Part shown: positions 3,951-56,309 of the stretch, piece by piece
Layout: every line of letters starts with the position of its first letter
Numbering within the stretch: position 1 is the stretch's first letter
Source of the DNA: Mobula hypostoma
Lineage: Eukaryota
Length of the DNA stretch: 64,000 bases
Direction of reading: 5' to 3'
Assembly: GCF_963921235.1 (NCBI RefSeq)
Contig: NC_086107.1
Location: 86,676,001-86,740,000, forward strand
The notes under the pieces: model-generated
Told to the model about the DNA's origin: nothing
The model's input: the letters and a program-made list of their open reading frames with translations, nothing else
The model's database searches: none
Position numbers and translations under genes: made by a program

Positions 3951-4367
<417 letters not shown>

Positions 4368-4431
4368 TCAGCAGTGCGATTACAGCCTGAAATATCAGGA
4401 TTGAAGTGTCAGAGCAGACGCTGGGTCTGGC

Positions 4432-4518
4432 TTTTAAAGAGTTGATGAAGGGCCGCCCAGCTCCCTCTGATTGGTTGGAATGGAGATGTCCATCATAGGG
4501 TCCCAGCGATGCGATTGG
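4432..4518 (-). promoter_or_regulatory. H3 promoter (TATA-like box and two CCAAT boxes)
   Basis: Minus strand TTTAAAA at 4432-4438; CCAAT at 4470-4474 and 4514-4518. Confidence 0.7.
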
Positions 4519-4940
4519 ATGTCTTTGCTTAATCAGTTTGAAGCTGGCCGACGTGGGGAAGGGGTGAGGAATACAGGCGTTAGTTGTGCCCAAATATGGA
4601 AACCGGTGACGGACGATCATAATTCAACCAATCTAACTGCAGAGATTTGAGGCTCGTTCAATTTCAAATCGCCCGCCAATTTCTAGAGCAACCGGGGCTA
4701 GTTTCTTATAATTAATAGAATCACGAATCATCCAATTTCAATTCAATTTAAACAATCATTTTATTTCCCTCAGATATCTGAATCTGAATGTTTGCACATG
4801 TACTGAATAGCTTCTCGAGGTGAGTGAATTCAGTCCTGCCAGAAACGGGAGCTGAGGCAGAAAATTGAAAGAGATTTTAATTTACTGTATGTAATAGTTT
4901 GAGGAAAAACATAGCCACCAAAGTACCACACGAAATCTGC

Positions 4941-4982
4941 ACAGCTCTTTCCTGGAAGATGTGGGTGGCTCTTAGAAGAGCC
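4941..4982 (-). promoter_or_regulatory. Histone 3' stem-loop and histone downstream element (H1)
   Basis: Minus strand GGCTCT-TCTA-AGAGCC at 4967-4982, then ACCCA. A textbook U7-pairing AAAGAGCTGT lies at 4941-4950. Confidence 0.93.
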
Positions 4983-5015
4983 GTTGGTTTCAGGTTTATA
5001 AGAGCAATTTCTTAT

Positions 5016-5639
5016 TTACTTTTTTTTGGCCGCTGTCTTGGCTTTCACAGATTTTGCCTTCGGCTTGGGTTTTGCCGACTTCTTGGCCACCTTGGGGGCT
5101 GCGACTTTCTTCGGACTCTTGGGTTTCTGCGCGGTCTTCTTGGTCGCTGTTTTCTTAGCTGCCGCTTTTTTAACCACAGTTTTCTTAACCCCTTTGGTCT
5201 TGGCGGGAGATTTCTTGGCACCTGTTTTCCTGGCCACAGATTTCTTGGCCACTGCCTTCTTGGTCTTAGGTGCCTTGGCCGCTGGTTTCTTCGCTTTTTT
5301 CACGACTTTCCCGGTATGTTCTTTTTTAGCGGCCCTCAAGGAGCCGGAGGCACCTGCGCCCTTAGTGTGAACCAGGGTGCCTTTATCCACTTTCCTTTTA
5401 ATGGTCAACCTGATCTGACCTTTCAGCTTTTGTACATCGACGCCGCTGCTGGCCAAACTCTTCTTTATCGCGGCTACGGACACCCCTCGCTGACTGCGGC
5501 AATCGGCCACAATCTTGTCGATTTGATCGCCCAGTTTGGGACCAGTTGACTTGGTCCGGACGGCCGCCTTCTTCTTCTTGGCAGCCTTGGTTGCAGAGGC
5601 GGGTGCCGCTGGTGGAGCCACTTCTGCGGTCTCGGTCAT
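5016..5639 (-). CDS. H1: Replication-dependent linker histone H1
   Basis: 207-aa intronless ORF with an 'ETA..APPAAP' N-tail, a winged-helix region ending 'TKGAGASGS', and a K/A/P-rich tail with SPAK/SPKK motifs. Stem-loop lies downstream. Confidence 0.96.
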   Translation of the reverse strand: MTETAEVAPPAAPASATKAAKKKKAAVRTKSTGPKLGDQIDKIVADCRSQRGVSVAAIKKSLASSGVDVQKLKGQIRLTIKRKVDKGTLVHTKGAGASGSLRAAKKEHTGKVVKKAKKPAAKAPKTKKAVAKKSVARKTGAKKSPAKTKGVKKTVVKKAAAKKTATKKTAQKPKSPKKVAAPKVAKKSAKPKPKAKSVKAKTAAKKK

Positions 5640-5716
5640 GGTCGGAACCTCTGCACAAATTCTCTCGAACTCTGAAGTGTGTGAGAAATGAAGCGAGAGG
5701 CGGCGGTGCTGAGCAA

Positions 5717-5788
5717 TTTAAAGGCAGCGAGCGGACGGGGCGGAAACATCCTGCAGTCAGCTCCCGGCCGCTCCGTCTCTCTGTGTTT
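5717..5788 (-). promoter_or_regulatory. H1 promoter (TATA-like box, GC box, H1/AC box)
   Basis: TTTAAA at 5717-5722, GC box at 5737-5743, and the H1-specific AAACACA on the minus strand at 5782-5788. Confidence 0.75.
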
Positions 5789-11381: not shown

Positions 11382-12641
11382 TGTCACCCGATGCGAATAT
11401 GTGAGAGACACTGAAGTGGGTCCATAGGTCACAGACTTTAATGCCAACGGTGTTAAAGGGAAAAGAAAGCAATAAATGCTCAGGCAAACCGGGCCATAAC
11501 CTAAAACTCTCAAATGGAAAATGAAGGCTACACTGCGGCTGAAAAGAACAAGTCAAGTCAAGTCACTTTTTATTGTCATTTCGACCATAACTGCTGGTAC
11601 AGTACACAGTAAAAACCAGACAACTTTTTTCAGGACCATAGTGCTACATGAAACAATACAAAAACTATACTGAAATATGCAAGACAACACAAAAACTACA
11701 CTAGCCTACAGACCTACCCAGGATTGCATAAAGTGCACAAAACAATGCAGGCATTAGAATAAATAATAAACAGGACAATAGGCACAGTAGAGGGCAGTAG
11801 GTTGGTGTCAGTCCAGGCTCTGGCTATTGAGCAGTCTGATGGGGGAAGAAACTGTTACATAGTCTGGTTGTGAGAGCCCGAAAGCTTCGGTGTCTTTTGC
11901 CAGATGGCAAGAGGGAGAAGAGTTTGTATGAGGGGTGTGTGGGGTCCTTCATAATGCTGATTGCTTTATGGATGCAGTGTGTGGTGTAAATGTCTGTAAT
12001 GGCGGGAAGAGAGACCCCGATGATCTTCTCAGCTGACCTCACTATCCGCTGCAGGGTCTTGCCATCCGAGATGGTGCAATTTCCGAACCAGGCAGTGATG
12101 CAGCTGCTCAGGATGCTCTCAATACAACCTCTGTTGAATGTGGTGAGGATGGAGGGTGGGAGATGGACTTTTCTCAGCCTTCGCAGAAAGTAGAGACACT
12201 GCTGGGCTTTCTTTGCTATGGGGCTGGTGTTGAGGGACCAGGTGAGATTCTCTGCCAAGTGAGCACCAAGAAATTTGGTGCTCTTAACGATCTCTACAGA
12301 GGAGTCGCCGATGTTCAGCAGAGAGTGGTCGCTGCATGTCCTCCTGAAGTCAACAACCATCTCTTTTGTTGTGTTCACATTCAGAGACAGGTTGTTGGCA
12401 ACTAAGAATAAAATGAATATCACTAGTCTTTAGAGTCAGTTGACTCGACACTCCAATTTCTCAGGCAAAGTGGAATGAAAGCAGGCAACGAAGCGTTGCT
12501 GTGTCCTGTCCAAGTCTCGACAAGCACTACAACAAGTATGGAGTTAAATACTATCACAGTTAAATAATAATTAGCTGACATGCGCATTTTCAAAAGCACA
12601 ATTGCCGTATCTACTGTGCTGCCGAATCCGTGGTTGTGACA
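11382..12641 (-). mobile_element. Second copy of the same LTR, inverted and split by a LINE insertion
   Basis: 11382-11551 and 12399-12641 are the reverse complement (with substitutions) of 9559-9985. The same PBS-like 12-mer follows at 11370-11381. Confidence 0.8.
11552..12398 (-). mobile_element. 5'-truncated Rex1/Babar-like (CR1-group) LINE inserted in the LTR
   Basis: Open RT C-terminal frame 'NNLSLNVNTTKEMVVDFRR...KKAQQCLYFLRRLRK...CITAWFGNC...NSFFP' (11824-12400). Minus-strand tail AATAAAAAGT(GACTT)n. Confidence 0.85.
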
Positions 12642-14765: not shown

Positions 14766-15629
14766 AAATTCATGGATTATATTTTACTGAAATCTTATAT
14801 ATGCTATGTGGCGTGTGCTGTGTGTGATTGTTAATACTATGTTTTGCACCTTGGCCCCCAAAGTAACTCTGTTTTGTTTGGCTGTTTTCATGTGTATGGT
14901 TGAATTACAATTAAACTTGAACATGAATCTTAACCTTGCCCTGCTGAAACTTCCACAAAAATGACTTTACAGATGGGCCAGATGGTGAAGTATTTGGTAT
15001 ACTGGCCTTCAAGCAGTGAAGACAATTAGTATAGGAGCTGGAATGTGATGTTCTTTTTAGACAAGATATTGGTGAGTCCACACCCCAAATATTGTGTGCT
15101 GCTTTGGTCACCCCATTGTAGAAGAGATGTAATTAAGTTACAAAGAGTGTAAAGAAGCTGTAGAACAATAATGGTGGCAATCGAGGGCTACGTTACAGAG
15201 AGAGGTTGGGCAGGCTAGACCTTCTATCCTTGGTGAGTAGTAAACTGGGAATTGACATTACAATGACATATATAATCATGAGGAGATGAGTGCATGCAGT
15301 CTTCTACCCAGTAATAGAGAATCAAAAAGCCAAAGGGTATAGATTACACTCACCACAGGCCTTCAGTCAGACAGGAAACCATCTACTACCACTGTCTAGC
15401 TTCTCCCACAAAGCTGATATCTAATCCAATTTACTACCTCTTTGAATGCCGATTGACTAAACCTTCCTGACCAACCTTCCCTGCAGGACCTTGTCAAATA
15501 CTTGCTAAAATCCATGTAGACAACATCCAATGTCTTGTCTTCATCAACTTTCCTGATAACTTCCTCAAAAAACACTCTAGGATTGGTTTGACATGACCTA
15601 CCACACACAAAGCCATGCTGACTACATTA

Positions 15630-17947: not shown

Positions 17948-18352
<405 letters not shown>

Positions 18353-18382
18353 ATCTGCGAAACATTTGTCTGGCAACACAAA

Positions 18383-18423
18383 GGCTCTTTTCAGAGCCAC
18401 TCACGGTGTCTGTGGAAGGGCTG
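18383..18423 (+). promoter_or_regulatory. Histone 3' stem-loop and histone downstream element (H2A)
   Basis: GGCTCT-TTTC-AGAGCC at 18383-18398, then ACTCA, then GGAAGGGCTG at ~18414-18423. Confidence 0.93.
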
Positions 18424-19293
18424 AGCTGGGGAGTTCGTCCAGAGTAGCTGGAGCAGACAAGTCTCTCCAGCCACATTTTGACTCTTACCTGAAATAAACC
18501 AACTTCTCTCTGTGCCCGGACTCCCTCCCAGTTCTGAGTTCCTTTATCCTCCCGTATTTTACCAGAACTGAGGATATTCTCTCGCGTTCGCCCCTGTGCT
18601 TCCCAGAGCGGTGAATCCAACGAGCGGACCGACTGTCTAATGAACAGATGACATACTCCAGACTAACCTCAGACCCCAGAATATGAAAAACCCGCCAAGA
18701 TTATAATTTTATCCATTAGTTCTAACAACTGCAGACTTGTAAACAGGATTTCACATTCCTAAGGTTCCCCCTTCATTTATAATAAAGACCGTGTGTGAAT
18801 TCCTCACACGGGCGATTATTTGATTTTAATTTTCACTGATTTCCGATGGGAATAAACGCCGATTCACAGAACGCGGTAGGGTCAGTGTTTTATGTACAAC
18901 GCATCCGATTATAGACGGGTCACAACTGCAGTCGAAGCAGACACCGTAGTGTTAGTTCTGTGAAAGGACCATGAGTGAAACTATTGTCATCTCGAGTTAA
19001 AATCCGATTCAGGGCTTTTGCAAAGAGGGGTACTACAGTTAATATATCGCATTCAAAACAATTAAATATCAACGACAGCAAAGATCTTTACTGGCTGTAA
19101 AACTTTGTGTAAGTGAGACACAAAATGGCGAATAAAAAAGGGGAAGTGAGAGGGCAAAATGGCCGTGAGCTGGGATTATGACACCGGAATTCTACGGAGC
19201 AGTGGAAAATTTACTTTTCATACACAGAAATAAAATCACCTCCGACAGTAAAAACCTCCGAAGACAAGCTCGTTGCAGTCGAATGACGAAGCA

Positions 19294-19335
19294 TTAACTC
19301 TTCCGTGGAAACTGTGAGTGGCTCTTAAAAGAGCC
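19294..19335 (-). promoter_or_regulatory. Histone 3' stem-loop and histone downstream element (H2B)
   Basis: Minus strand GGCTCT-TTTA-AGAGCC at 19320-19335, then ACTCA, then GGAAGAGTT. Confidence 0.92.
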
Positions 19336-19354
19336 GTTGTTTTCGTTTGTTTAG

Positions 19355-19738
19355 TCANNNNNNNNNNNNNNNNNNNNNNNNNNNNNNNNNNNNNNNNNNN
19401 NNNNNNNNNNNNNNNNNNNNNNNNNNNNNNNNNNNNNNNNNNNNNNNNNNNNNNNNNNNNNNNNNNNNNNNNNNNNNNNNNNNNNNNNTCGACCGCTTGT
19501 TGTAATGGGCCAGACGGGAAGCCTCGCCCGCGATGCGCTCGAAAATATCGTTCACGAACGAGTTCATGATGGTCATGGCCTTGGAGGAGATGCCGGTGTC
19601 GGGGTGAACCTGCTTCATCACCTTGTAGACGTAGATGGAGTAGGTCTCCCTCCTCGACCTCCTGCGCTTCTTGGTGCCCTTGGCTTTGGACACGGCTTTC
19701 TTGGCGCCTTTCTTGGGAGCTTTGGGCTGATCAGGCAT
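19355..19738 (-). CDS. H2B: Replication-dependent histone H2B (3' part falls in an N gap; stop position uncertain)
   Basis: ATG at 19738: [14 protein letters not shown]...[23 protein letters not shown]...RLAHYNKRS, then Ns. Stem-loop lies just beyond the gap. Confidence 0.95.
19358..19488. other. Assembly gap / unresolved bases (131 N)
   Basis: Run of n seen directly. Confidence 0.99.
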
Positions 19739-19790
19739 TTCTTCAGTCAGTAACCGACCCAGAAATAACCAAAAGCGATTGGACTTCCAA

Positions 19791-19903
19791 TTAAATAAGC
19801 CGTGTGCCCCCGCCCTATGCAAAGGAGGAATCGGGATAATTAGGTTCTCATTGGTCGGTCCGGACGAATGAAAATTAAGATTCCCACCTAACGCTTTGAT
19901 TGG
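19791..19903 (-). promoter_or_regulatory. H2B promoter (TATA-like box, octamer variant, two CCAAT boxes)
   Basis: Minus strand TATTTAA (~19791-19797), CTTTGCAT (19817-19824; 7/8 match to octamer ATTTGCAT), CCAAT at 19850-19854 and 19899-19903. Confidence 0.75.
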
Positions 19904-20059
19904 ACAACATAAAGGACATTACACAGCCCTCGCTGTGTGAAAACTTACAAGGCAAGATAGAGTTACCAGGACTCTGCAATGGTTTATTAGGTTAACGTGA
20001 GATGACAAAAAGCTGGTTATCCAATATTGGTGACATTAGTTGAGTGTTAGGACACTTCA

Positions 20060-25814: not shown

Positions 25815-26921
25815 TTAAACTTTTTCCCCAGTGTGAACTCGGTAGTGCGCCACAAGGTTGCATGACTGAGTGAATCTCTTCCCACATTCAGAGCAGGTGA
25901 ACGGTCTCTCCCCAGTGTGAAGTCGGTAGTGTGCCACAAGGGTAGATGACTGAGAGAATCCCTTCCCACATTCAGAGCAGGTGAACGGCCTTTCACCAGT
26001 GTGAACTCGGTAGTGCACCTCAAGGGTGGATGACTGAGTGAATCCCTTCCCACATTCAGAGCAGGTGAAAGGTCTCTCCCCAGTGTGCACTCGGTAGTGA
26101 GCCACAAGGTGGGATGACTGAGTGAATCCCTTCCCACATTCAGAGCAGGTGAATGGCCTCTCCCCAGTGTGAACTCGCTGATGTAGCTTCAGTTGAGATG
26201 TCTGACTGAATCCCTTCCCACAGTCTAAACAAGTGAACAGTTTCTCCCCAGTGTGAATTGACTGGTGTGCCAGTAGATGAGATGACCGAGAGAATCCCTT
26301 CCCACAGTCTGAGCAGGTGAACGGCCTCTCCCCAGTATGAACTCGCTGGTGTACCTTCAGTTGAAATGACCGAGGAAATCCCTTCCCACAGTCTGAGCAG
26401 ATGAACGGCCTCTCCCCAGTGTGAACTGACTGGTGTGTCTGTAGGTGAGATGAGTGACTGAATCCCTTCCCACACACGGAACAGATGAATGGCTTCTCTC
26501 CCGTATGGACTCGCTGGTGTGTCTGTAGGTGGTATGACCGAGTAAATCCCTTCCCACATTCAGAACAGGTGAAAGGCGTTTCCCCAGTGTGAACTCGCTG
26601 GTGTGTCTTCAGGTGGGATAACTGAGTGAATCCTTTCCCACATTCACAGCAGATGAATGGCCTCTCTCCAGTGTGAACTGACTGGTGTGCCAGTAGGTGA
26701 GATGATCGACTGAATCCCTTCCCACATTCAGAGCAGGTGAACGGCCTCTCCCCAGTGTGAATTGACTGGTGTGCCAGGAGGTGAGATGACCGAGAGAATC
26801 CCTTCCCACAGTCTGAGCAGTTGAATGGTCTCTCCCCAGTGTGAACTTGCTGGTGTACTCTCAGTTGAGACAACTGAGTGAATCCCTTCCCACACTCGGA
26901 GCAGGAAAACTGCATCTCCAT
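25815..26921 (-). CDS. C2H2 (Kruppel-type) zinc-finger protein with 13 tandem fingers and no recognisable effector domain
   Basis: 13 repeats of F-x-C-x2-C-GKxF-x5-L-x2-H-x3-H with TGE(R/K)P-type linkers. First in-frame ATG at 26921 (368 aa). The frame is closed upstream by a TGA. Confidence 0.9.
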
Positions 26922-46380: not shown

Positions 46381-47359
46381 CTTGCATTGAAATACATGCA
46401 GGTCAGATCATAGTTGCACCATTATACAGCTTTTGATTCCTGACTGTCTGAGGTCCTAACAACATCAATCTCCACAACCTCTCCACTATGTGTTCCAACA
46501 CTCTGCTTCCCATTCCCCTGCAACTTTAGTTTAAACACCCCCATGCAGCACCAGCAAACCTCACCATGAGGGTATTAGATCCACTCCAGTTCAGGTGCAT
46601 TGAGAACTAATAAAATAATGGAGAAATTACACTAATATTTGATGTCCACGTTGTTGGCAGAAAATGCTGAGACCCCACTCTCTCACTCCCTTTTATATAC
46701 TGTGTACAGTTTGTTGTGATCTACATCTACCTGATCTTTCATTGATCCTGTTACAGTTATTATTTTACAGATTTGCTGAATATCCCGACAGGAAAATGAT
46801 TCTCAGTGTAGTTTGCAGAGACATATTTGTACACTGAAATTAAAATTTACTTTGAAATTTAAACTTTGAAGCCATCTCTTTGATACAGGTCGATATACAT
46901 TGGGAACTAATAAATAAATAGACTAGATTAGATTCAACTTTATTGTCATTGTGCCGAGTACAGATACAAAGCCAATGAAATGCAGTTAGCATCCAACCAG
47001 GAATGCAAAGAATAGTGTTATTTACAAAATAACTGTAAATAAAAAGTAAATGCTACAGCACACAAATATAAAAGTACTGAGACAGTACAATATGGGTGCA
47101 ACACTGCTTAGCGCTGTGCTGTGAGTTTCAGCAGGGTCACAGCCTCAGGGAAGAAGCTCTTCCTGTGCCTGCTGGTGCGGGAGCGGAGGCTCCTGTAGAA
47201 TGAAGAAATTTTTAAAATATTTAATGTCCATGTTATTAGGAGAATTCAAGAACCCATTTCTCTCTCTCAAACTCTTTTATATAGTATATATATTTATAGA
47301 AGTATATATACATTGGATATTGCTGGGAGGGCGTAGCAGTAATGTACTTGGAGCGGTGT

Positions 47360-48135
47360 GTCTCAGGGGGAGATCTGTACACTGACCGGTGTCTCTCAGG
47401 GACAGATCTATACACTGACCAGTGTCCCTCTGTCCCTCTCTCTCAGGGGGAGATCCGTACACTGACCAGTGTCTCTCAGACCCTCTCTCTCAGGGGGAGA
47501 TCTGTACACTGACTAGTGTCTCTCTGTCCCTCTCTCTCAGGGAGAAATCTGTACACTGACCAGTATCTCTCAGGGGGAGATCTGTACACTGACCAGTGTC
47601 CCTTTGTACCTCTCACTCTGGGGGAAGATCTGTACACTGACCAGTGTCTCTCAGTCCCTCTCTCTCAGGGGGAGATCTGTACACTGACCAGTATCTCTCA
47701 GTCCCTCTCTCTCAGGGGGAGATCTGTACACTGACCAGTGTCTCTCAGCCACTCTCTGATGGGGAGATCTGTACACTGACCGGTTTCTCTCAGTTTCCCC
47801 CTCTCTCAGGGGGAGATCTGTACACTGACCATTGTCTCTCTGTCCCTCTCTCTCAGGGGGAGATTTGTACACTGACCAGTGTCTCTCAGCCCCTCTCTGA
47901 TGGGGAGATCTGTACGCTGACCAGTGTCTCTCAGGGGGAGATCTGTACACTGACCAGTGTCTCTCAGCCCCTCTCTGATGGGGAGATCTGTACGCTGACC
48001 AGTGTCTCTCAGGGGGAGATCTGTACACTGACCATTGTCTCTCTGTCCCTCTCTGATGGGGAGATCTGTACGCTGACCAATGTCTCTCGGGGATCTAAGT
48101 TCACTGACCAGTGTCTCTGGGTTCCTCTCTCTCGG
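47360..48135. repeat. Minisatellite, ~31-46-bp unit (ctctctcagggggagatctgtacactgaccagtgtctctcagtcc)
   Basis: Tandem copies read directly. Same family recurs at 53120-53410 and 54220-54690. Confidence 0.95.
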
Positions 48136-48299: not shown

Positions 48300-49300
48300 T
48301 GTACCCCAGTGACTGGGTGTGTAGGGACAGTGTACCTGTTGACTAAGTGCATGGTGGATATTGTACCCCTGTAACTGTGTGTGTGGAGGACACTGTACCT
48401 CTAACTGTGTGTGTGTGGAGGACACTGTACCCCTGTAACTGTGTGTGTGGAGGACACTTTACCCCTGTAACTGTGTGTGTGGAGGACACTGTACCTTTAA
48501 CTGTGTGTGTGGAGGACACTGTACCCCTGTAACTGTGTGTGTGGTGGACACTGTACCCCTGTAACTGTGTGTGTGGAGGACACTTTACCCCTGTAACTGT
48601 GTGTGTGGAGGACACTGTACCTCTGTAACTGTGTGTGTAGAGGACACTGTACCTCTGTAACTGTGTGTGTGGAGGACACTGTACCTTTAACTGTGTGTGT
48701 GGAGGACACTGTACCCCTGTAACTGTGTGTGTGGTGGACACTGTACCCCTGTAACTGTGTGTGTGGAGGACACTGTACCTTTAACTGTGTGTGTGGAGGA
48801 CACTGTACCCCTGTAACTGGGTGTGTGGAGGACACTTTACCCCTGTAACTATGTGTGTGGAGGACACTGTACCCCTGTAACTGTGTGTGTGGTGGACACT
48901 GTACCCCTGTAACTGTGTGTGTGGAGGACACTGTACCCCTGTAACTGGGTGTGTGGAGGACACTTTACTCCTGTAACTGTGTGTGTGGAGGACACTGTAC
49001 CCCTGTAACTGTGTGTGTGGTGGACACTGTACCCCTGTAACTGTGTGTGTGGTGGACACTGTACCCCTGTAACTGTGTGTGTGGAGGGCACTGTACCCCT
49101 GTAACTGTATGTGTGGAGGACACTGTACCCCTGTAACTGGGTGTGTGGAGGACACTTTACCCCTGTAACTATGTGTGTGGAGGACACTGTACCCCTGTAA
49201 CTGTGTGTGTGGTGGACACTGTACCCCTGTAACTGTATGTGTGGAGGACACTGTACCTCTGTAACTGTGTGTGTGGAGGACACTTTACCCCTGTAACTGT
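48300..49300. repeat. Minisatellite, 32-bp unit (ctgtaactgtgtgtgtggaggacactgtaccc), about 30 copies
   Basis: Highly homogeneous tandem array seen directly. It produces the repetitive THTVTGVQCPP pseudo-ORFs. Confidence 0.97.
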
Positions 49301-49819
49301 GAGGGGTCATGGAAGAGGGGTGAAGTTAAAATGATGCTAAATGGTGACTCCTTTACAACCAGCTCTATTTCTATTTTGGATATCTCCTTTCTCTCCTTTT
49401 CAAGATCCTTTTGAAGACCCTGACCTGGTGTTACCTCCTGACTTCAGTTCTTTGCGGGAGTTGAACCTGCTCTCAGGACATTACGACCGGGCGCTCTTTG
49501 ATATCCCAACAACGCAGTCTGGAAGGCAAGCGCACCTTCAGGGTTCCAGATTTCGTGGCTCTGGGGACATGTTGATTCTAGGCCAGTGACCATGACTGAA
49601 GCGTCGTGGGAGAATATGAAACATCGGGAGCAACGGGTTAGCTGCCGGGGGTTGTTTCTCGATAGCTGCACCTTTTTGTGTTTCTGGAGAGCTCGGAAAA
49701 AGTGACACAACAGACATTTAACATCATAAATCAGCAAGTTCTTTGTTATGTCTCCCTCTTGCTGTGAAACTGGTACACCCCTTTTTCCCTGATTAGGTAT
49801 GTTGAATTTCTCTGCGGCT

Positions 49820-50080: not shown

Positions 50081-50419
50081 CAGATATGTTGAAATACCGG
50101 GTGAACGAGTAGTTTTTGGAGTTCTACAAGTCTGTGTCTTTGCTGCACATTTGAGTGCTCAGTGGAGGACACTGATGCTTTTTGCCGGTGGGGTTGTGGG
50201 GGGATGGGGGGTTATCATTGCCTTACTGCTGCTTGTGTGTAGGAGGGGGAGCTGGGGGGACTTAGGGATTCTGACGTTTTAACTGACAGTCATTCTTTGG
50301 GGTACTCTTCTGTTTTCATGGATGTTTGCGAAGAAAAAGAATTTCAGGATGTATATTGTATCCATTTCTCTGACATTGAATGTACCTATTGAACCCAGTT
50401 TTTGGGATAGTGGGGCAAT

Positions 50420-50805
50420 AATGTTCCCCAGTGACTGGGAGGTTGAGGGACAGTGTTCCCCAGTGACTGGGTGTGTGAGGAGACAGTGTAACCCAGTGAC
50501 TGGGAGTGTGATGCACAGTGTTCCCCAGTGACTGGGAGGTTGAGGGACAGTGTTCCCCAGTGACTGGGTGTGTGGGGACAATGTACCCAGTGACTGGGAG
50601 TGTGGGGACAGTGCACCCCAGTGACCGGGTGAGTAGGGGACAGTATTCCCCAGTGACTGGAAGTGTGGGGACAGTGTATCCCAGTGACTGGGTGTGTGGG
50701 ACAGTGTATCCCAGTGACTGGGAGTGTGGGGACAGTGTACCCCAGTGCCTGGGTGAGTAGGGGCAGTGTTCCCCAGTGACTGGGGTGGGACAGTGTACCC
50801 AGTGT
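50420..50805. repeat. Minisatellite, ~31-33-bp unit (ccagtgactgggagtgtggggacagtgtacc)
   Basis: About 12 diverged tandem copies seen directly. Confidence 0.92.
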
Positions 50806-50928
50806 ATCTGTATGTCGCATTTTACGTTTCTGTGTTGAGCTGAGGCTGGTCCCAGTGGACTGACAGGTTCATTTCCCCAGGACCACTGTGTGCAGAGCTG
50901 TGTGTTTTTCTGTTGAGGTGAGGGGGTC

Positions 50929-51076
50929 CTACAGATCGATGGGTTCAGTGCCCCAGTTTCTCCTTTCCCTGGAGAAATGTGCCATTGCCCTTTCGTTCCA
51001 CTCAGGAGGCTGCCGGTCACCGCAATCTTTCTTCATGCACTGAAGTCTCTGTAAACGGTGCTCATCTCTGTTGGAA
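50929..51076 (-). CDS. Candidate cytoplasmic-tail exon of the Ig-superfamily receptor
   Basis: Acceptor 'ctctgctttctgtcccacag|' joins in phase 2. Reads (S)SNRDEHRLQRLQCMKKDCGDRQPPEWNERAMAHFSRERRNWGTEPIDL*. No Tyr. Confidence 0.4.
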
Positions 51077-51264
51077 CTGTGGGACAGAAAGCAGAGGTGA
51101 TGGGGTCCGTACTGAAACTTTGTCCTTCTGCATCCTATGTAGCCCCTCTGTCCAACCCCAATTTCAATATCACCCCACTCCTGCCCCCTCCCTCTGTCCC
51201 CCAGTCACCAGTCTCATGGACTGAGTGTCAGACCCACTTTGCTTCAGTGCCTGAAGACATTTAC

Positions 51265-51397
51265 CTTCGTTCAGCTCCGTTCCCCCATGTGACCCAGCAA
51301 ATCGTGGGGACAGCGGAGATCAGGAAAATCACCAACACTATGAGTCTGATAATCAGGAACGATCTCTGAGACGTGGCCGCCAGTGTTGAATCAGGCG
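51265..51397 (-). CDS. Transmembrane exon of an Ig-superfamily receptor
   Basis: Acceptor 'cttttctcctccctggtgcag|' and donor AG|GTAAAT. In phase 1 with the Ig exon: SPDSTLAATSQRS-FLIIRLIVLVIFLISAVPTICWVTW-GNGAER. Confidence 0.7.
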
Positions 51398-53119
51398 CTG
51401 CACCAGGGAGGAGAAAAGATTCCGTGATTAATCCCATCCTAATCTCCCAGTGACACAGGATCGACAGATCCATCATCTCACCTCAGGCCACAGAAAGTTC
51501 TGTCACCCCCAAAACTGTATCTTCCCCCTCCAATCACCCTCACTTCCCCTCCAGTCCCCACTGACTTCACTTCCATTCATTCCCCACCCTCCAATAACCC
51601 CTCATCTCCTTCAAATCATCCCCCATTCATCCCTTGCATCCCCATCTGATCCTTCCTCAAATATCTTTCCATCCTTTCTAACCACCCCCTCTCACATCTC
51701 TTCCCTCCACCCCCACCTCGCCTCTACAATATCCCATAGGTCTAATCCTGGAAGGTCCCATTGGTACATTAAAGGAAGATACCAGACAGATTTGCAATGA
51801 GGATTGAAGAAACTGTCAAGGACTTAAACAAATCTTCATGGAGCACATTACAGGAAGGACGTGATTACAATGGAGACAGTGCGGAAGAGATTCACCAGTA
51901 TGTGGCCTGGACTGGAGACTTTAGTTATGAGGAGAGATGGGATAGGCTGGGCTCATTTTCCCTGGAGTGAAGAAAAGCTGAGGGGTGCCTGACAGGTAGA
52001 AGAATATAACTGTATAAGTTCATAATTAGATTGGGGAGAGAGAATTCTCTTCCCGTGGTAAGGCAACATAACAGTAGGTAAGTTGAAGTTGAGAGAAAGG
52101 AGTTTTAATGGTGATTTGAAGGTTAAGCTCTTTCCAAGACAGTGGTTGATATCTGGAAGGTCTTGCCAGAGGAGGTGCTGGGATCAGATACAAACACGGT
52201 GTTTCAGAGCCATTTGGACACACTCTGAAACAGGCAGCTTACGGGAGAGGGGAACCTAATGTGGACAAGTGGGGTTAGTGTGGGTGGGCAAAGAGGCTGG
52301 TTTGGACACGGTGGGCTGGAAAGGTTGTTTCTAAGCTCTGTGAATCTGTATCTAGAAGTAGACCAGTCAATGTGATAGATCTGGATTCTCAGAAGGTTTT
52401 CAATCAGGGCCCACACAGCATCACAACAACAAGGTTAGTGCTCATGGACATGAAGATAAAGTAACTGCAGATGCTGGAAATCCGAGCTTAAAGCAGAGGA
52501 TAGCAAAGGGTCTGTGACCTGAGCCGTGACCTCTGTTCCTCGGCCCAGGGGTGTAGCCTGACCTGACCTGTGTTATTGTTCAGCACGTGAAGCGGGCGAA
52601 AGTGCTGCTCCCTGAGGTTACGGTGGGTTTCACTGGAACAATGTGGGAGCACAAACTGGACGGGAGTGAGATCGGAGGATTTGGAGGGAGGAGGGGTCAC
52701 CCAGTGCACTGACACAGGAGTTATGGAGTTATAGAGTCATACAGCATGGAAAAAGGCCCTTCAGCCCATCTCATCCATGGCAAATATGTTGCCCAGTGAG
52801 TGCTCAGGGATTCCATCTGCCTTTGTTTGAACCACAGCCCTCTGAATCTCTCCTATCCATCGACTTATGTACATGGCTTTTAAATTTGCAAATGTGACTG
52901 CCTCAACCACTGTTTCTGGCAGCTCATTCCAAATAACTGTCTGGGATCTTCCTCCCAAGGGATATCTGTTCAAAGACTAACGTCCCACAGTTGCTGTACA
53001 GGAAGTGTATCACTCAGTCCCTCTGTCTCAGTGCGATATCCAGACAAAGACCGCAGTCTCTACTCCCCGTCTATGGAGGCATACTTATACACTGACAGGT
53101 GATCATCTCTGTTCAGGAT

Positions 53120-53410
53120 ACCAGTGTCGCTGAGTCCCTCTCTCTCAGGGGGAGATCTGTACCCTGACTGGAGTTTCTCAGTCCCTCTCTCTTTCAGGGG
53201 AAATCTGTACATTGACCAATGCCTCTCAGTCTCTCTCATTTAGGCAGAGATCTGTGCACTGAACGGTGTCTCTCAGTCCCTCGCACTCAGGGGAATACTG
53301 GTACAGTGACCAGTGTCTCTCATTCCCTCTCTCTCTCTCTCTCAGGGGAAATCTGTACACTGACCCATGTCTCTCAGTCCCTCTGTCTCGGGAATATTTG
53401 TACACTGAAC
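53120..53410. repeat. Diverged copy of the 47.4-kb minisatellite family
   Basis: 'ctctctcagggggagatctgtac..tgac' units. Confidence 0.85.
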
Positions 53411-53424
53411 AGTTTAACCCAGAT

Positions 53425-54215
53425 AAATGTGAGGTGTTGCTCCTTGGTAGGGCAAATGTAAGAAGATAGTACACTGTTAATAAGAAGACCCTTAACAGTT
53501 TTTTCTGAGCCGAGAGACCTTGGGGTCCAAGTTCATTGCTCCTTGAAAATGGCTAGAGAGATCAAAAGGTTGGTTAGGAAGGCTTATTGAATGCTTGCTT
53601 TTATTAGTTGAGGCACTGAGTTCAAAAGTCAAGGGGTTACGTTGCAACTTTATAAAACTCTGGTTAGGCCACGTCTGGATTATTCTATACAAATGTGGTC
53701 ACCCCACTAGAGGAAGGAAGTTGAGGCTTTGGAGGGTGAAGAGTTTTACCAGAATGCTCCCTGGTTTAGAAGGCATGTGCTGTCATGACAGGCTGGACAA
53801 ACTTGGGTTGTTTTCTCTGGAGTGTCGGAGGCTGAGGGGAGATCAGATAGAGTGTATAAGATTATGAGAGGCACAGATACAGTAGACAGGGAGTATCTGT
53901 TTCCTAGGGTAGATATGTCTAATACCAGAGGGCAAGCAATGAGGGTGAGCTGGGTTAGGTTCAAAGGGGATGTGAGGGGTAAGTTTTTTACTCAGAGAGT
54001 GGTGGATGCCTGGAATGTATTGCCTGGGACGGTGGAAGAGGCTTTTAATAGATGTTTAGATGGGGCACATGGATGTGAGTAAGATTGAGGGATATGGACA
54101 TTGTGTAAGTGGGAAGGATTAGTTAATGGGTGTTTTTGATTTGATTTTTAGTTGGTTTGGCACAACACTGTGAGTGAAGGGCCTTTTTCTGTGCTGTACT
54201 GTTCTATGTTCTATA
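53425..54215 (+). mobile_element. CR1 LINE 3' fragment
   Basis: 'DRLDKLGLFSLECRRLRGD', 'RGKFFTQRVVDAWN', (ttctatg) tail. Confidence 0.85.
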
Positions 54216-54219
54216 TTCT

Positions 54220-54690
54220 CAGTTCCTCTCCCTCATGGGAAGATCTGCACACTGACCAGTGAGTTTTTCCCTCTCTCTCTCTCAGGGGTAAATCTGCAAC
54301 ACTGACCAGTGTCTCTTGTCCCTCTTTCTCAGGGGGAGATCTGTACACTGACCGGTGTCTCTCAGACCCTCTCTCTCAGTGGGAGATCTGTACACTGACC
54401 GGTGTCTCTCAGTCCCTCTCTCACCGGGGGAGATATATACACTGACCGGTGTCTCTTAGTCTCTCTCAGGGGGAGATCTGTACACTCACCGGTGTCTCTC
54501 AGTCTCTCTCTCTCTCAGGAGGAGATCTGTACACTGACTGGTGTCTCTCAGTCTCTCTCAGGAGGAGATCTGTACACTGACTGGTGTCTCTCAGTCTCTC
54601 TCAGGAGGAGATCTGTACACTGACTGGGGTCTCTTGTCCCTCTTTCTCAGGGAGTGATCTGTACACTGACTGGTGACTCTTGTTGTCTCT
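54220..54690. repeat. Minisatellite of the 47.4-kb family
   Basis: About 11 tandem units of 'ctctctcaggrggagatctgtacactgacyggtg'. Confidence 0.92.
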
Positions 54691-54806
54691 CTACTGCATA
54701 TACTGAATACTAAAATTGAACACAGAGCACAGGGATGGTACAAGCTGAAGCTGTCTACAGTGACCCCTCACACTCCCTGAGTTAGATTGCTTCCTCGGAC
54801 ACTCAC

Positions 54807-55094
54807 ACGGCACGTTGCGTTTACAGACGTCCTGCAGTGGGATCCGTGCTGTGTCCTTACTGACAGTGTTCCTGGCCTCACACGTGTACACAACATCTTT
54901 AACCTCTGCTGTGTAATGAACCTCTACCGTCTCTCCGTGTTTCCAAGCGCGATAGTTGCTGTTGTCTCCCACAGCTGCTTCTTCTCTCCACCACCTGAAT
55001 GTGGGGGAGTCGCCTGAGGTCACAGAGCAGGTTAGGATGACGTCACTGATCCCGGGGATGCACTGGAACTTGATGTTTGCTCCGGACACAGGCT
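54807..55094 (-). CDS. Ig C2-like domain exon (CD2/SLAM/CEACAM-like second domain)
   Basis: 288-bp phase 1-1 exon (ccacag|AG CCT GTG ... CCG T|gtgagt): EPVSGANIKFQC...VILTCSV...TFRWW...VYTCEARNTVS...QDVC. Has the B-strand Cys, C-strand Trp and Y-x-C motif plus an extra Cys pair. Confidence 0.85.
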
Positions 55095-56309
55095 CTGTGG
55101 TTGGGAAAGCAAGATGAAAGATGAATAAAGGAGATCCTTGATCCCCAAATCCCCCATTCCGTCTCCAACAGTTCCGAGTAAACTTTCAGCCATCCCAGCT
55201 CATTTCCACCCACCAGTTTAACCCTTCCCTCACCCTTCAGTTCAGCCAAATGCTGCTGGAGAAAGTTCCCACCTGTGTGCACCCTCTTTCCCAACCACTA
55301 CCCACACTCATTTACAATCTCTCCGCTGTTCCGTTTATGGCACAGTACCCCGGGATTTCTTGCCCGTTCCACATCTCTTGTCTCTCCTGTGAGTGGTCAT
55401 GGTATCTCTTCTACAGCTAAGTGTGATCCAGCCCAGCCCTGTCCTGCATCTGGTCCAACAGAAGTCAGAGCCCAAGTCATTTGGTAGGTTTAAAGCAGGT
55501 TTTTTGATTAGTAAGGCTGTCAAAGGTTACGGGGAAATGGCAAGAGGATGGGGTTAAGAGGGATGATAAATCAGCCATGATGGAATAGCAGTGCAGAAGT
55601 GGTGGGCTGAATAGCCTTATTCTGCTGCTCTGTCTATTGGTCTAATTTCATCATCCAGATCTTTGACATATAACATAAAAAGAATTGTAACACCCTGAGA
55701 AAAGACTCACTGCTAACGTAATGGCCTTTCTGTGGAAGCAGTGTTTGGGTTATGGTTAGAGATAACGGGTGCTTTGGAATGTAAGCTGGGTTGTTTGTTC
55801 AGCAGGAGAGGAAGAAGGAAGACGCTGGAGAGAATCGGTCATAGGATTCGACCCGGTGGGGGACCATGATTCAATGGAACAAAGTGTCGCAGTCAATTGG
55901 TGAATATGACTTTTGGAAGAGTTGAGATCCAACTGGTGCATATTTGACTGTTAAATTATGATGGACCCTTTTTGTTTTTTCTTTACTAACCCTTTAACTA
56001 AGATTCATAAATATAGTTCCTTTAATCGTATGCCATGTGCTGTCTGTTATTTCGTAGCACTGAGTTGTAACAGGGTAGCAAATTACACAACATCCACACA
56101 AACCGGGGTTTGGGGTGCAAGAGTTGTCTGAATCTGATGAGTTTGATGAGACTGGAGTGTGTATTCCTGAGACTTATGCAGTCAAGGAAACCAGAGGGGT
56201 TTCAGAAGCAGCCCCAACATCACGAGTCACCAGCAGCCAACCTGCAAAGGCCCCCTTTATACAACTCTTTGTCTTCTGCGAGTCAGCCAAACTTCTAATA
56301 GACTAGTAT

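Follow-up and report, generated by a model that had tools for sequence, protein, structure and literature searches.

A 64,000-nucleotide (nt) stretch of the genome of the ray Mobula hypostoma (assembly GCF_963921235.1, contig NC_086107.1, positions 86,676,001 to 86,740,000; hereafter, the window) holds on its minus strand the last three coding exons of a receptor gene with an immunoglobulin (Ig) V domain, an Ig C2 domain, and a transmembrane (TM) segment (V-C2-TM). On sequence matches and a predicted structure, the gene is a CD2/SLAM-family receptor. SLAM receptors are regarded as self-signaling through immunoreceptor tyrosine-based switch motifs (ITSMs) and SAP-family adaptors. The product of this gene carries an arginine in its TM helix and a cytoplasmic tail free of tyrosine, and the comparison with ITSM-bearing sawfish genes shows the steps by which its motif was silenced. 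We propose that this SLAM-family receptor may have been converted from ITSM signaling to coupling with an adaptor of the FcR-gamma/CD3-zeta type, a reading to which we give a probability of roughly one in two.

The structure of the gene was read directly in the window sequence. Three minus-strand exons with canonical splice sites, encoding the Ig C2 domain, the TM segment, and the tail, were found as follows.

55094-54807, minus strand: Ig C2/I-set exon with four cysteines (two disulfides), phase 1-1, starting at ...ccacag/AG and ending at ...CCGT/gtgagt; covered by RNA contigs.
51398-54806, minus strand: intron between the C2 and TM exons, GT..AG, with the RNA joint 51397/54807; contains minisatellites and LINE-like debris.
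51397-51265, minus strand: stalk and TM exon, starting at ...gtgcag/CG and ending in phase 2 at ...CGAAG/gtaaat; covered by RNA.
51077-51264, minus strand: short intron, rich in G runs, that separates the TM and tail exons, with the RNA joint 51076/51265.
51076, minus strand: start of the tail exon at the acceptor ...cccacag/TT; its TAG stop lies at 50931-50929.
50422-50928, minus strand: 3' untranslated region (UTR), reaching at least 50422, within RNA contigs that cover 50422-51076; includes a 32-nt minisatellite at 50422-50804.

Support for this model was sought in Logan RNA contigs of the same species, taken from four runs and aligned to positions 50250-56150 of the window. The joint 54807/51397 was present in all four runs and the joint 51265/51076 in two of the four, both with GT..AG borders on the minus strand and zero mismatches. 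A single 879-nt contig (X19, record 16) joins 55020-54807, 51397-51265, and 51076-50545. An earlier note on this DNA, made from the sequence alone, had predicted the in-frame splice from the phase 1-1 Ig exon to a hydrophobic exon across minisatellites and had named both junctions as the ones to map; the RNA joints agree with it, and tandem repeats do occur in the intron between the two exons and also in the 3' UTR. That note had considered three tyrosine-free tails. The one that uses the acceptor at 51076 and adds 48 residues is the tail that we observed, and it contains no tyrosine; use of an acceptor at 51048 (RDFSA*), intron retention (the read-through ERR*), and skipping of the TM exon were not seen in the contigs of the four runs.

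The spliced product has 188 residues and coincides exactly with residues 132-319 of the M. hypostoma protein XP_062917564.1 (here P0151). The gene is therefore already annotated, under the automatic RefSeq name "hemicentin-1-like," and the view that it had escaped assembly does not hold. The upstream part of the gene lies elsewhere. Contigs at the 5' end of the Ig exon carry up to 333 additional bases, and since these bases come from outside the window, an upstream exon exists. A search of the window for V and leader exons, using tblastn with eleven relatives and motif scans, found none in the 9 kb upstream; the gene of an M. birostris paralogue spans 37.7 kb. The minus strand contains no AATAAA from 53600 to 48183.

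To place the gene in a family, relatives were collected by an exhaustive profile search with the Ig exon and by a word-based search. These returned V-C2-TM proteins of rays and sharks, named automatically as SLAM family member 5-, 8-, or 9-like, CD48 antigen-like, and Ly-9-like. With phmmer, the two domains of P0151 matched CD2 (1hnf, E = 3e-6), SLAMF6 (2if7, E = 1e-5), and CD48 (2dru, 2ptt, and 2edo). The AlphaFold2 model of P0151 has a mean predicted local distance difference test (pLDDT) score of 78, with the Ig domains above 90, and Foldseek placed CD48, CD2, NTB-A, and CD58 at ranks 1-5 and 7 (TM-score by target, 0.76-0.83), with CEACAM1 close behind. Pfam recognized a V-set domain in P0151 (E = 2.7e-7), gave Receptor_2B4 20.0 bits, just below the cut-off of 21 bits, and placed the C2 exon above the thresholds for Ig_3 and I-set. 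The CD2/SLAM-like assignment of the earlier note is thus borne out by both the sequence matches and the structural ranking, and the relatives form a SLAM-like ray family in which, as that note had expected of SLAM receptors, ITSMs are carried in the proteins' own tails.

The cysteines of the protein are distributed in the same way. It is a hallmark of the CD2/SLAM family that the V domain lacks the canonical disulfide and that the C2 domain has two. The V domain of XP_062917564.1, encoded by an exon outside the window, has no cysteine before residue 142, and the cysteines of the C2 domain, C142, C153, C202, and C221, are all encoded at 55094-54807; C153, C202, and C221 are nearly invariant in an alignment of 41 sequences. 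Hemicentins are very large secreted matrix proteins with dozens of Ig modules, features that are absent from this 319-residue V-C2-TM product. The name "hemicentin-1-like" arises from generic I-set similarity, as seen in the giant multi-Ig matches of the profile search; it is wrong and should be replaced by a SLAM/CD2-family name. The accession number of the paralogue XP_062917563.1 is adjacent to that of XP_062917564.1, which suggests a tandem gene.

The TM arginine was then followed through the family. Its position in the window is as follows.

51345-51347, minus strand: codon AGA of the TM arginine, R244 of XP_062917564.1; GTT (Val) stands at the aligned column in both Pristis (sawfish) genes.

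In a maximum-likelihood tree of 35 ectodomains, P0151 falls in a clade with support of 100/100 together with P0004 (M. birostris), P0152 (M. hypostoma), and P0154 and P0163 (Hemitrygon akajei); the M. birostris orthologue P0205 and the isoforms P0206 and P0207 are further members. P0152 is the neighboring M. hypostoma paralogue with an adjacent accession number, and its RefSeq model skips the TM exon. All clade members with a TM segment (P0151, P0205, P0004, P0154, P0163, P0206, and P0207) combine the TM arginine with a tyrosine-free tail, so that the arginine singled out by the earlier note is conserved throughout these proteins. The arginine column reads ..LIIRLIV.., ..LLIRAVL.., ..LTIRLIV.., and ..LLIRSVL.. 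in the clade, and the tails are of the type SSNRD.H.LQ ... RQPPE.N. ITSM-bearing relatives have Val or Gly in this column and tails with one or two TxYxx[VI] motifs. Within the clade, conservation of the C2 domain is 84-97%. A search with the TM-plus-tail region returned P0151 and P0004 only. In the AlphaFold2 model, R244 lies inside one continuous helix (residues 230-266 of P0151) with a pLDDT of about 90 over the TM segment, and it is preceded by 5 hydrophobic residues and followed by 19-20.

No tyrosine occurs in the 55 residues past the TM segment, and no alternative tail exon was seen in the RNA. The TxYxx[VI] motif found in the cytoplasmic tails of signaling SLAM members is absent from the translated tail, and the RNA-supported tail exon, lacking tyrosine, carries no inhibitory (ITIM) or switch motif of the kind that would have contradicted the earlier proposal. 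The motif is nevertheless still discernible in the DNA. The +1 frame of the tail exon reads ..PTEMSTVYRDFSA followed by a stop, a peptide that also ends the RefSeq model P0152. Compared with the ITSM segment of nine relatives, this frame scored better than 99.3% of shuffles (P = 0.0065), whereas the translated frame was at the level of chance (P = 0.37).

The origin of this arrangement was explored by aligning the TM-to-tail region with two ITSM-bearing Pristis genes, L001 (protein P0033) and L002 (protein P0023). The following features were obtained.

51240-51264, minus strand: former end of the TM exon, now intronic, ..SSGTE in relatives; 91-93% identical to Pristis.
51261-51264, minus strand: derived 5' splice site AAG/GTAAAT, coding AAG GGATAT in Pristis; the donor is used in RNA.
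50989-51076, minus strand: part of the tail exon homologous to the ITSM exon, 88 nt here versus 89 nt in both Pristis genes.
51033-51074, minus strand: ITSM relic in the +1 frame, ..STVYRDF.. followed by TGA, with the tyrosine codon at 51053-51051; based on the shuffle test and the DNA alignments.
50992-51015, minus strand: RQPPEWNE box, read in the ancestral frame and kept throughout the ray SLAM-like family.
50929-50988, minus strand: former intron, now coding for the last 19 codons and the stop; the old donor is GC (50988-50987), and it is GT in both Pristis genes.

The gene of P0023 reads ..GAA AGG GAT ATG TCT TCA GGC ACT GAA G/GCAAGT across the end of the TM exon and its donor, and the window reads ..GAA CGA AG/GTAAAT GTCTTCAGGCACTGAAG CAAAGT at the aligned site. 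A G-to-T change yields an in-frame TAA (51263-51261), which is the stop of the ERR* reading, and at the same time a good donor, placed 23 nt upstream of its ancestral counterpart. The ancestral donor position is now CA (51241-51240) versus GC in Pristis, and splicing at the old donor could not bring the motif back, given the in-frame TAA. The end of the TM exon has shifted from phase 1, the ancestral state, to phase 2, so that the ITSM exon is entered in the latter phase and its motif is read out of frame as unrelated residues. A deletion of 1 nt within 51050-51046, among the five bases past the old tyrosine codon, restores the ancestral frame, so that the RQPPEWNE box is kept. RNA contigs then cross the old tail donor without a joint, and the last 19 codons are recognizably homologous to the sawfish intron. 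The direction of these changes is taken from the ..GTE[GD]/P..xTxY.. layout of most relatives and from the generality of ITSMs in SLAM proteins. No remnant of an exon for a second tyrosine motif was found in the window using tblastn and blastn.

Two other explanations of the phase change were considered and rejected. A frameshift inside the TM exon, with GTELNE in the +1 frame as the ancestral "GTE," is excluded by the Pristis DNA alignment, which shows that the true frame WGNGA corresponds to ancestral RRRRA; the phase change is thus due to the new donor. An 18-nt insertion carrying the donor had appeared in the comparison with P0033 alone, but the second Pristis gene shows that these 18 nt are ancestral coding sequence lost in P0033. 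To yield the annotated proteins, both sawfish gene models need a GC-AG intron after the TM exon (..CTGAAG/GCAAGT; L001:20285-20296 and L002:14494-14505). The intron at 51077-51264 is 78-79% identical to L001:20291-20468 and L002:14500-14677, versus 62-67% for the flanking coding exons, which points to constraint on the intron or else to fast evolution of the coding parts. A box of the form RQPP[EK]GN[EK] is present in nearly all ray SLAM-like tails, whether or not they bear an ITSM, and to our knowledge it has no assigned function.

The conversion that we propose builds on these changes. A juxtamembrane point change produced the new donor and the in-frame stop, the old donor was destroyed, and the ITSM exon came to be entered in phase 2. 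The 1-nt deletion just past the old tyrosine codon brought back the old frame with its RQPPEGNE-type box, and with GC in place of GT at the next donor, the message runs 19 codons into the former intron before its stop. A TM valine has become an arginine, conserved throughout the clade. Located five residues in from the helix's outer end, this arginine may dock on the paired aspartates of a dimer of the FcR-gamma or CD3-zeta type, and the receptor would then signal through the ITAM (immunoreceptor tyrosine-based activation motif) of its partner, in place of ITSM-bound SAP-family proteins. T-cell receptor alpha likewise uses an arginine at the top of its TM segment to assemble with aspartate-pair dimers.

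Precedents for such coupling have been described. CD89 and natural killer (NK) receptors dock on gamma/zeta dimers by an arginine near the top of the TM segment, for which it is enough that the basic residue be placed correctly (PMC13107469). Macaque KIR that have a TM arginine bind FcR-gamma rather than DAP12 (PMC8102735). In Xenopus, TM segments of the FcR-gamma-type NxxR pattern occur in an expanded CD2/SLAM family (PMC4536121), and such TM segments of FcR-like proteins were shown to bind FcR-gamma (PMC2413239). Literature searches on ITAM adaptors and SLAM proteins in cartilaginous fish returned nothing specific.

A second ray clade, sister to that of the window gene, also carries the arginine. 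P0183 (SLAMF9-like, M. hypostoma) and P0195 have arginine in the same alignment column, and their tails end just before the ITSM exon. P0208, also from M. hypostoma, is more than 90% identical to P0183, with a TM lysine and two tyrosine motifs, and the sister clade of P0183 and P0208 looks like a set of classical paired receptors. In the same clade, P0193 has a TM glutamate, and P0185 has no TM charge and keeps one tyrosine motif. The tree requires two gains of the embedded arginine. Tentatively, Myliobatiformes may have turned ITSM-type SLAM receptors into activating, ITAM-adaptor-coupled ones at least twice through an arginine at the same TM position, with the ITSM erased in the window gene, unusually precisely, by the phase shift and compensating deletion, which spared a conserved box downstream; we hold this to be somewhat less probable than not.

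The possibility raised in the earlier note that the window gene itself belongs to a paired-receptor family finds no such backing. Every TM-bearing member of its clade is of the arginine type, no near-identical counterpart with tyrosine motifs was found among the proteins retrieved, and the closest ITSM-bearing proteins are only about 45-48% identical. A true pair, P0183 and P0208, is present in the sister clade.

Several observations weigh against adaptor coupling. The 19-20 hydrophobic residues past R244 could span the bilayer alone, and R244 may be snorkelling at the outer membrane interface. The NxxR pattern that known FcR-gamma partners carry is absent, the sequence being S-F-L-I-I-R here, with leucine at the -3 position in all clade members. 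The tail is 55 residues long and contains a conserved box, which makes autonomous signaling by the tail possible; the combination of arginine and motif-less tail put forward in the earlier note stands as regards the conserved arginine and the lack of tyrosine and has to be qualified as regards the box and the missing NxxR. The RNA word depth at the gene is low (3-9), and the RefSeq models P0151 and P0205, from the two Mobula species, show no hydrophobic signal peptide at their start; P0205 is marked partial. Finally, the association of TM arginine with ITSM loss comprises only two independent contrasts and has no statistical power, and the ancestral state rests on two genes of a single outgroup species, Pristis.

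The length of the hydrophobic run and the lack of NxxR would both be expected of a signaling-poor SLAM member of the CD48, SLAMF8, and SLAMF9 kind, serving mainly as a surface ligand or decoy, with its arginine at the outer interface and without a partner. Many relatives do have short tyrosine-free tails and no TM charge (for example, P0030 and P0174-P0184), and the lack of a near-identical ITSM-bearing partner in the clade fits as well. Against it count the retention, in three species and two paralogue lineages, of an arginine that replaces Val or Gly within a segment that is hydrophobic in relatives, and the independent appearance of arginine at the same column in a second ITSM-less clade. 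Moreover, positive charges on the outer side are disfavored by the positive-inside rule (PMC13107469). We regard a ligand or decoy of this kind as rather unlikely, though as the likeliest of the alternatives.

The low RNA depth and the missing signal peptides could also indicate a decaying gene that is still transcribed, in which nothing but damage accounts for the phase shift, the deletion, and the dead donor, and the leaderless protein never reaches the membrane. The gene has three lesions relative to its relatives, and its exons are less conserved with respect to Pristis than its intron. The second lesion, however, compensates the first exactly, and the frame is open in all models of the clade that include the TM segment and tail, from both Mobula and Hemitrygon. 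The conservation of the C2 domain within the clade, the clean splicing, and the normal leader (MDTRQLL..LWLILSVPVSG) of the paralogues P0004 and P0207 also argue against decay, which we consider improbable. Equally improbable is tyrosine-independent signaling by the tail itself, through the RQPPEGNE-type box or a class-II-like C terminus, with the arginine used to assemble with a different membrane partner: nearly the whole family has the box, and the 1-nt deletion put it back in frame, but no known function was found for it, and the last 19 codons are former intron, with the Hemitrygon models ending differently (P0154) or earlier (P0163, P0206, and P0207).

The remainder of the window contains other features. 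Minisatellites with units of about 43-47 nt lie in the intron between the C2 and TM exons, at 53120-53413 and 54225-54683. These two arrays, together with 47343-48118, form one minisatellite family containing ..GGGGGAGATCTGTACACTGACC.., with units of about 33, 47, and 78 nt and a word depth in the thousands in the RNA contig sets. The 32-nt minisatellite of the 3' UTR occurs again 1.1 kb further, at 48300-49301, and at the same relative place in the sawfish intron (L002, about 15085-15445; ~75-85% identity); it is an old, conserved tandem array. The only gene neighborhood in the window is a replication-type histone cluster 30 kb downstream, read as stop-to-stop open reading frames at 3954-5717 and 17948-19918.

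3954-4367, minus strand: H3.
5019-5717, minus strand: H1.
17948-18349, plus strand: H2A.
About 19489-19918, minus strand: H2B, running into a masked N stretch at 19358-19488.

An open reading frame at 11827-12429 on the minus strand matches Pfam ALKBH8_N (E = 4e-18), and a C2H2 zinc-finger-like reading at 25935-26048, also on the minus strand, was a chance tblastn match.

Part of this picture was already known, namely, the gene model (as a misnamed automatic prediction), the family, and the presence of activating-type TM segments in frog SLAM relatives. What is new here is the ray clade, the in situ origin of the arginine inside the TM exon native to the family, and the nucleotide-level view of how the ITSM was silenced in three steps. 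No paper on shark and ray SLAM proteins turned up in our literature search, despite the family's large expansion in automatic annotation. The locus provides a nucleotide-level account of receptor rewiring, in which a new donor arose, a deletion compensated for it, the message came to read on into an intron, and the TM segment gained an arginine; RNA and conservation in two ray families back this account. Should adaptor coupling be borne out, SLAM would be added to the immune-receptor families that repeatedly yield activating forms, here in the oldest living jawed vertebrates. If the conversion happened twice, adaptor-coupled SLAM signaling would be an old and recurrent solution in jawed vertebrates, and a natural experiment on the role of the conserved box would be at hand.

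The ray gene resembles the mammalian SLAM/CD2 proteins (SLAMF1-9, CD48, CD2, and CD58) in combining a V domain without the canonical disulfide and a C2 domain with two disulfides, and TxYxx[VI] switch motifs occur in its relatives, each in an exon of its own, as in the mammalian proteins. CD48, SLAMF8, and SLAMF9 also lack an ITSM. The ray gene differs in that its ITSM was silenced by a change of reading phase and in that it is part of a large ray-specific expansion whose members bear automatic names only. We know of no mammalian SLAM/CD2 member with an arginine in its TM helix. A further parallel is the sister ray clade (P0183 and P0208), of the same family, where the ITSM was likewise lost and arginine occupies the same column; there, in contrast, the tail is cut just before the ITSM exon, and the motifs persist in a partner of more than 90% identity.

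As summarized in PMC4536121, the Xenopus CD2/SLAM members with NxxR (Guselnikov et al. 2011) share with the ray gene a SLAM ectodomain, an arginine toward the outer end of an activating-type TM segment, and membership in an expanded family that also holds ITSM-bearing proteins. The frog TM segment is of the conserved NxxR type common to LRC and FCRL receptors, whereas the ray segment is the family's own, aligning with the Pristis TM exon, with a change from Val to Arg and no Asn. No report of motif loss by frame change in the frog proteins was found in the literature searched. With the receptors coupled to FcR-gamma/CD3-zeta, such as CD89, GPVI, NKp46, OSCAR, LILRA, and the macaque activating KIR, which follow the principle of assembly of one arginine with an aspartate pair (RDD) (PMC13107469), the ray protein shares a tail without tyrosine motifs and a TM arginine that may likewise lie in the helix's outer third. 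It differs from them in belonging to another Ig family, in lacking NxxR, in the longer hydrophobic run past the arginine, and in its 55-residue tail with the conserved box.

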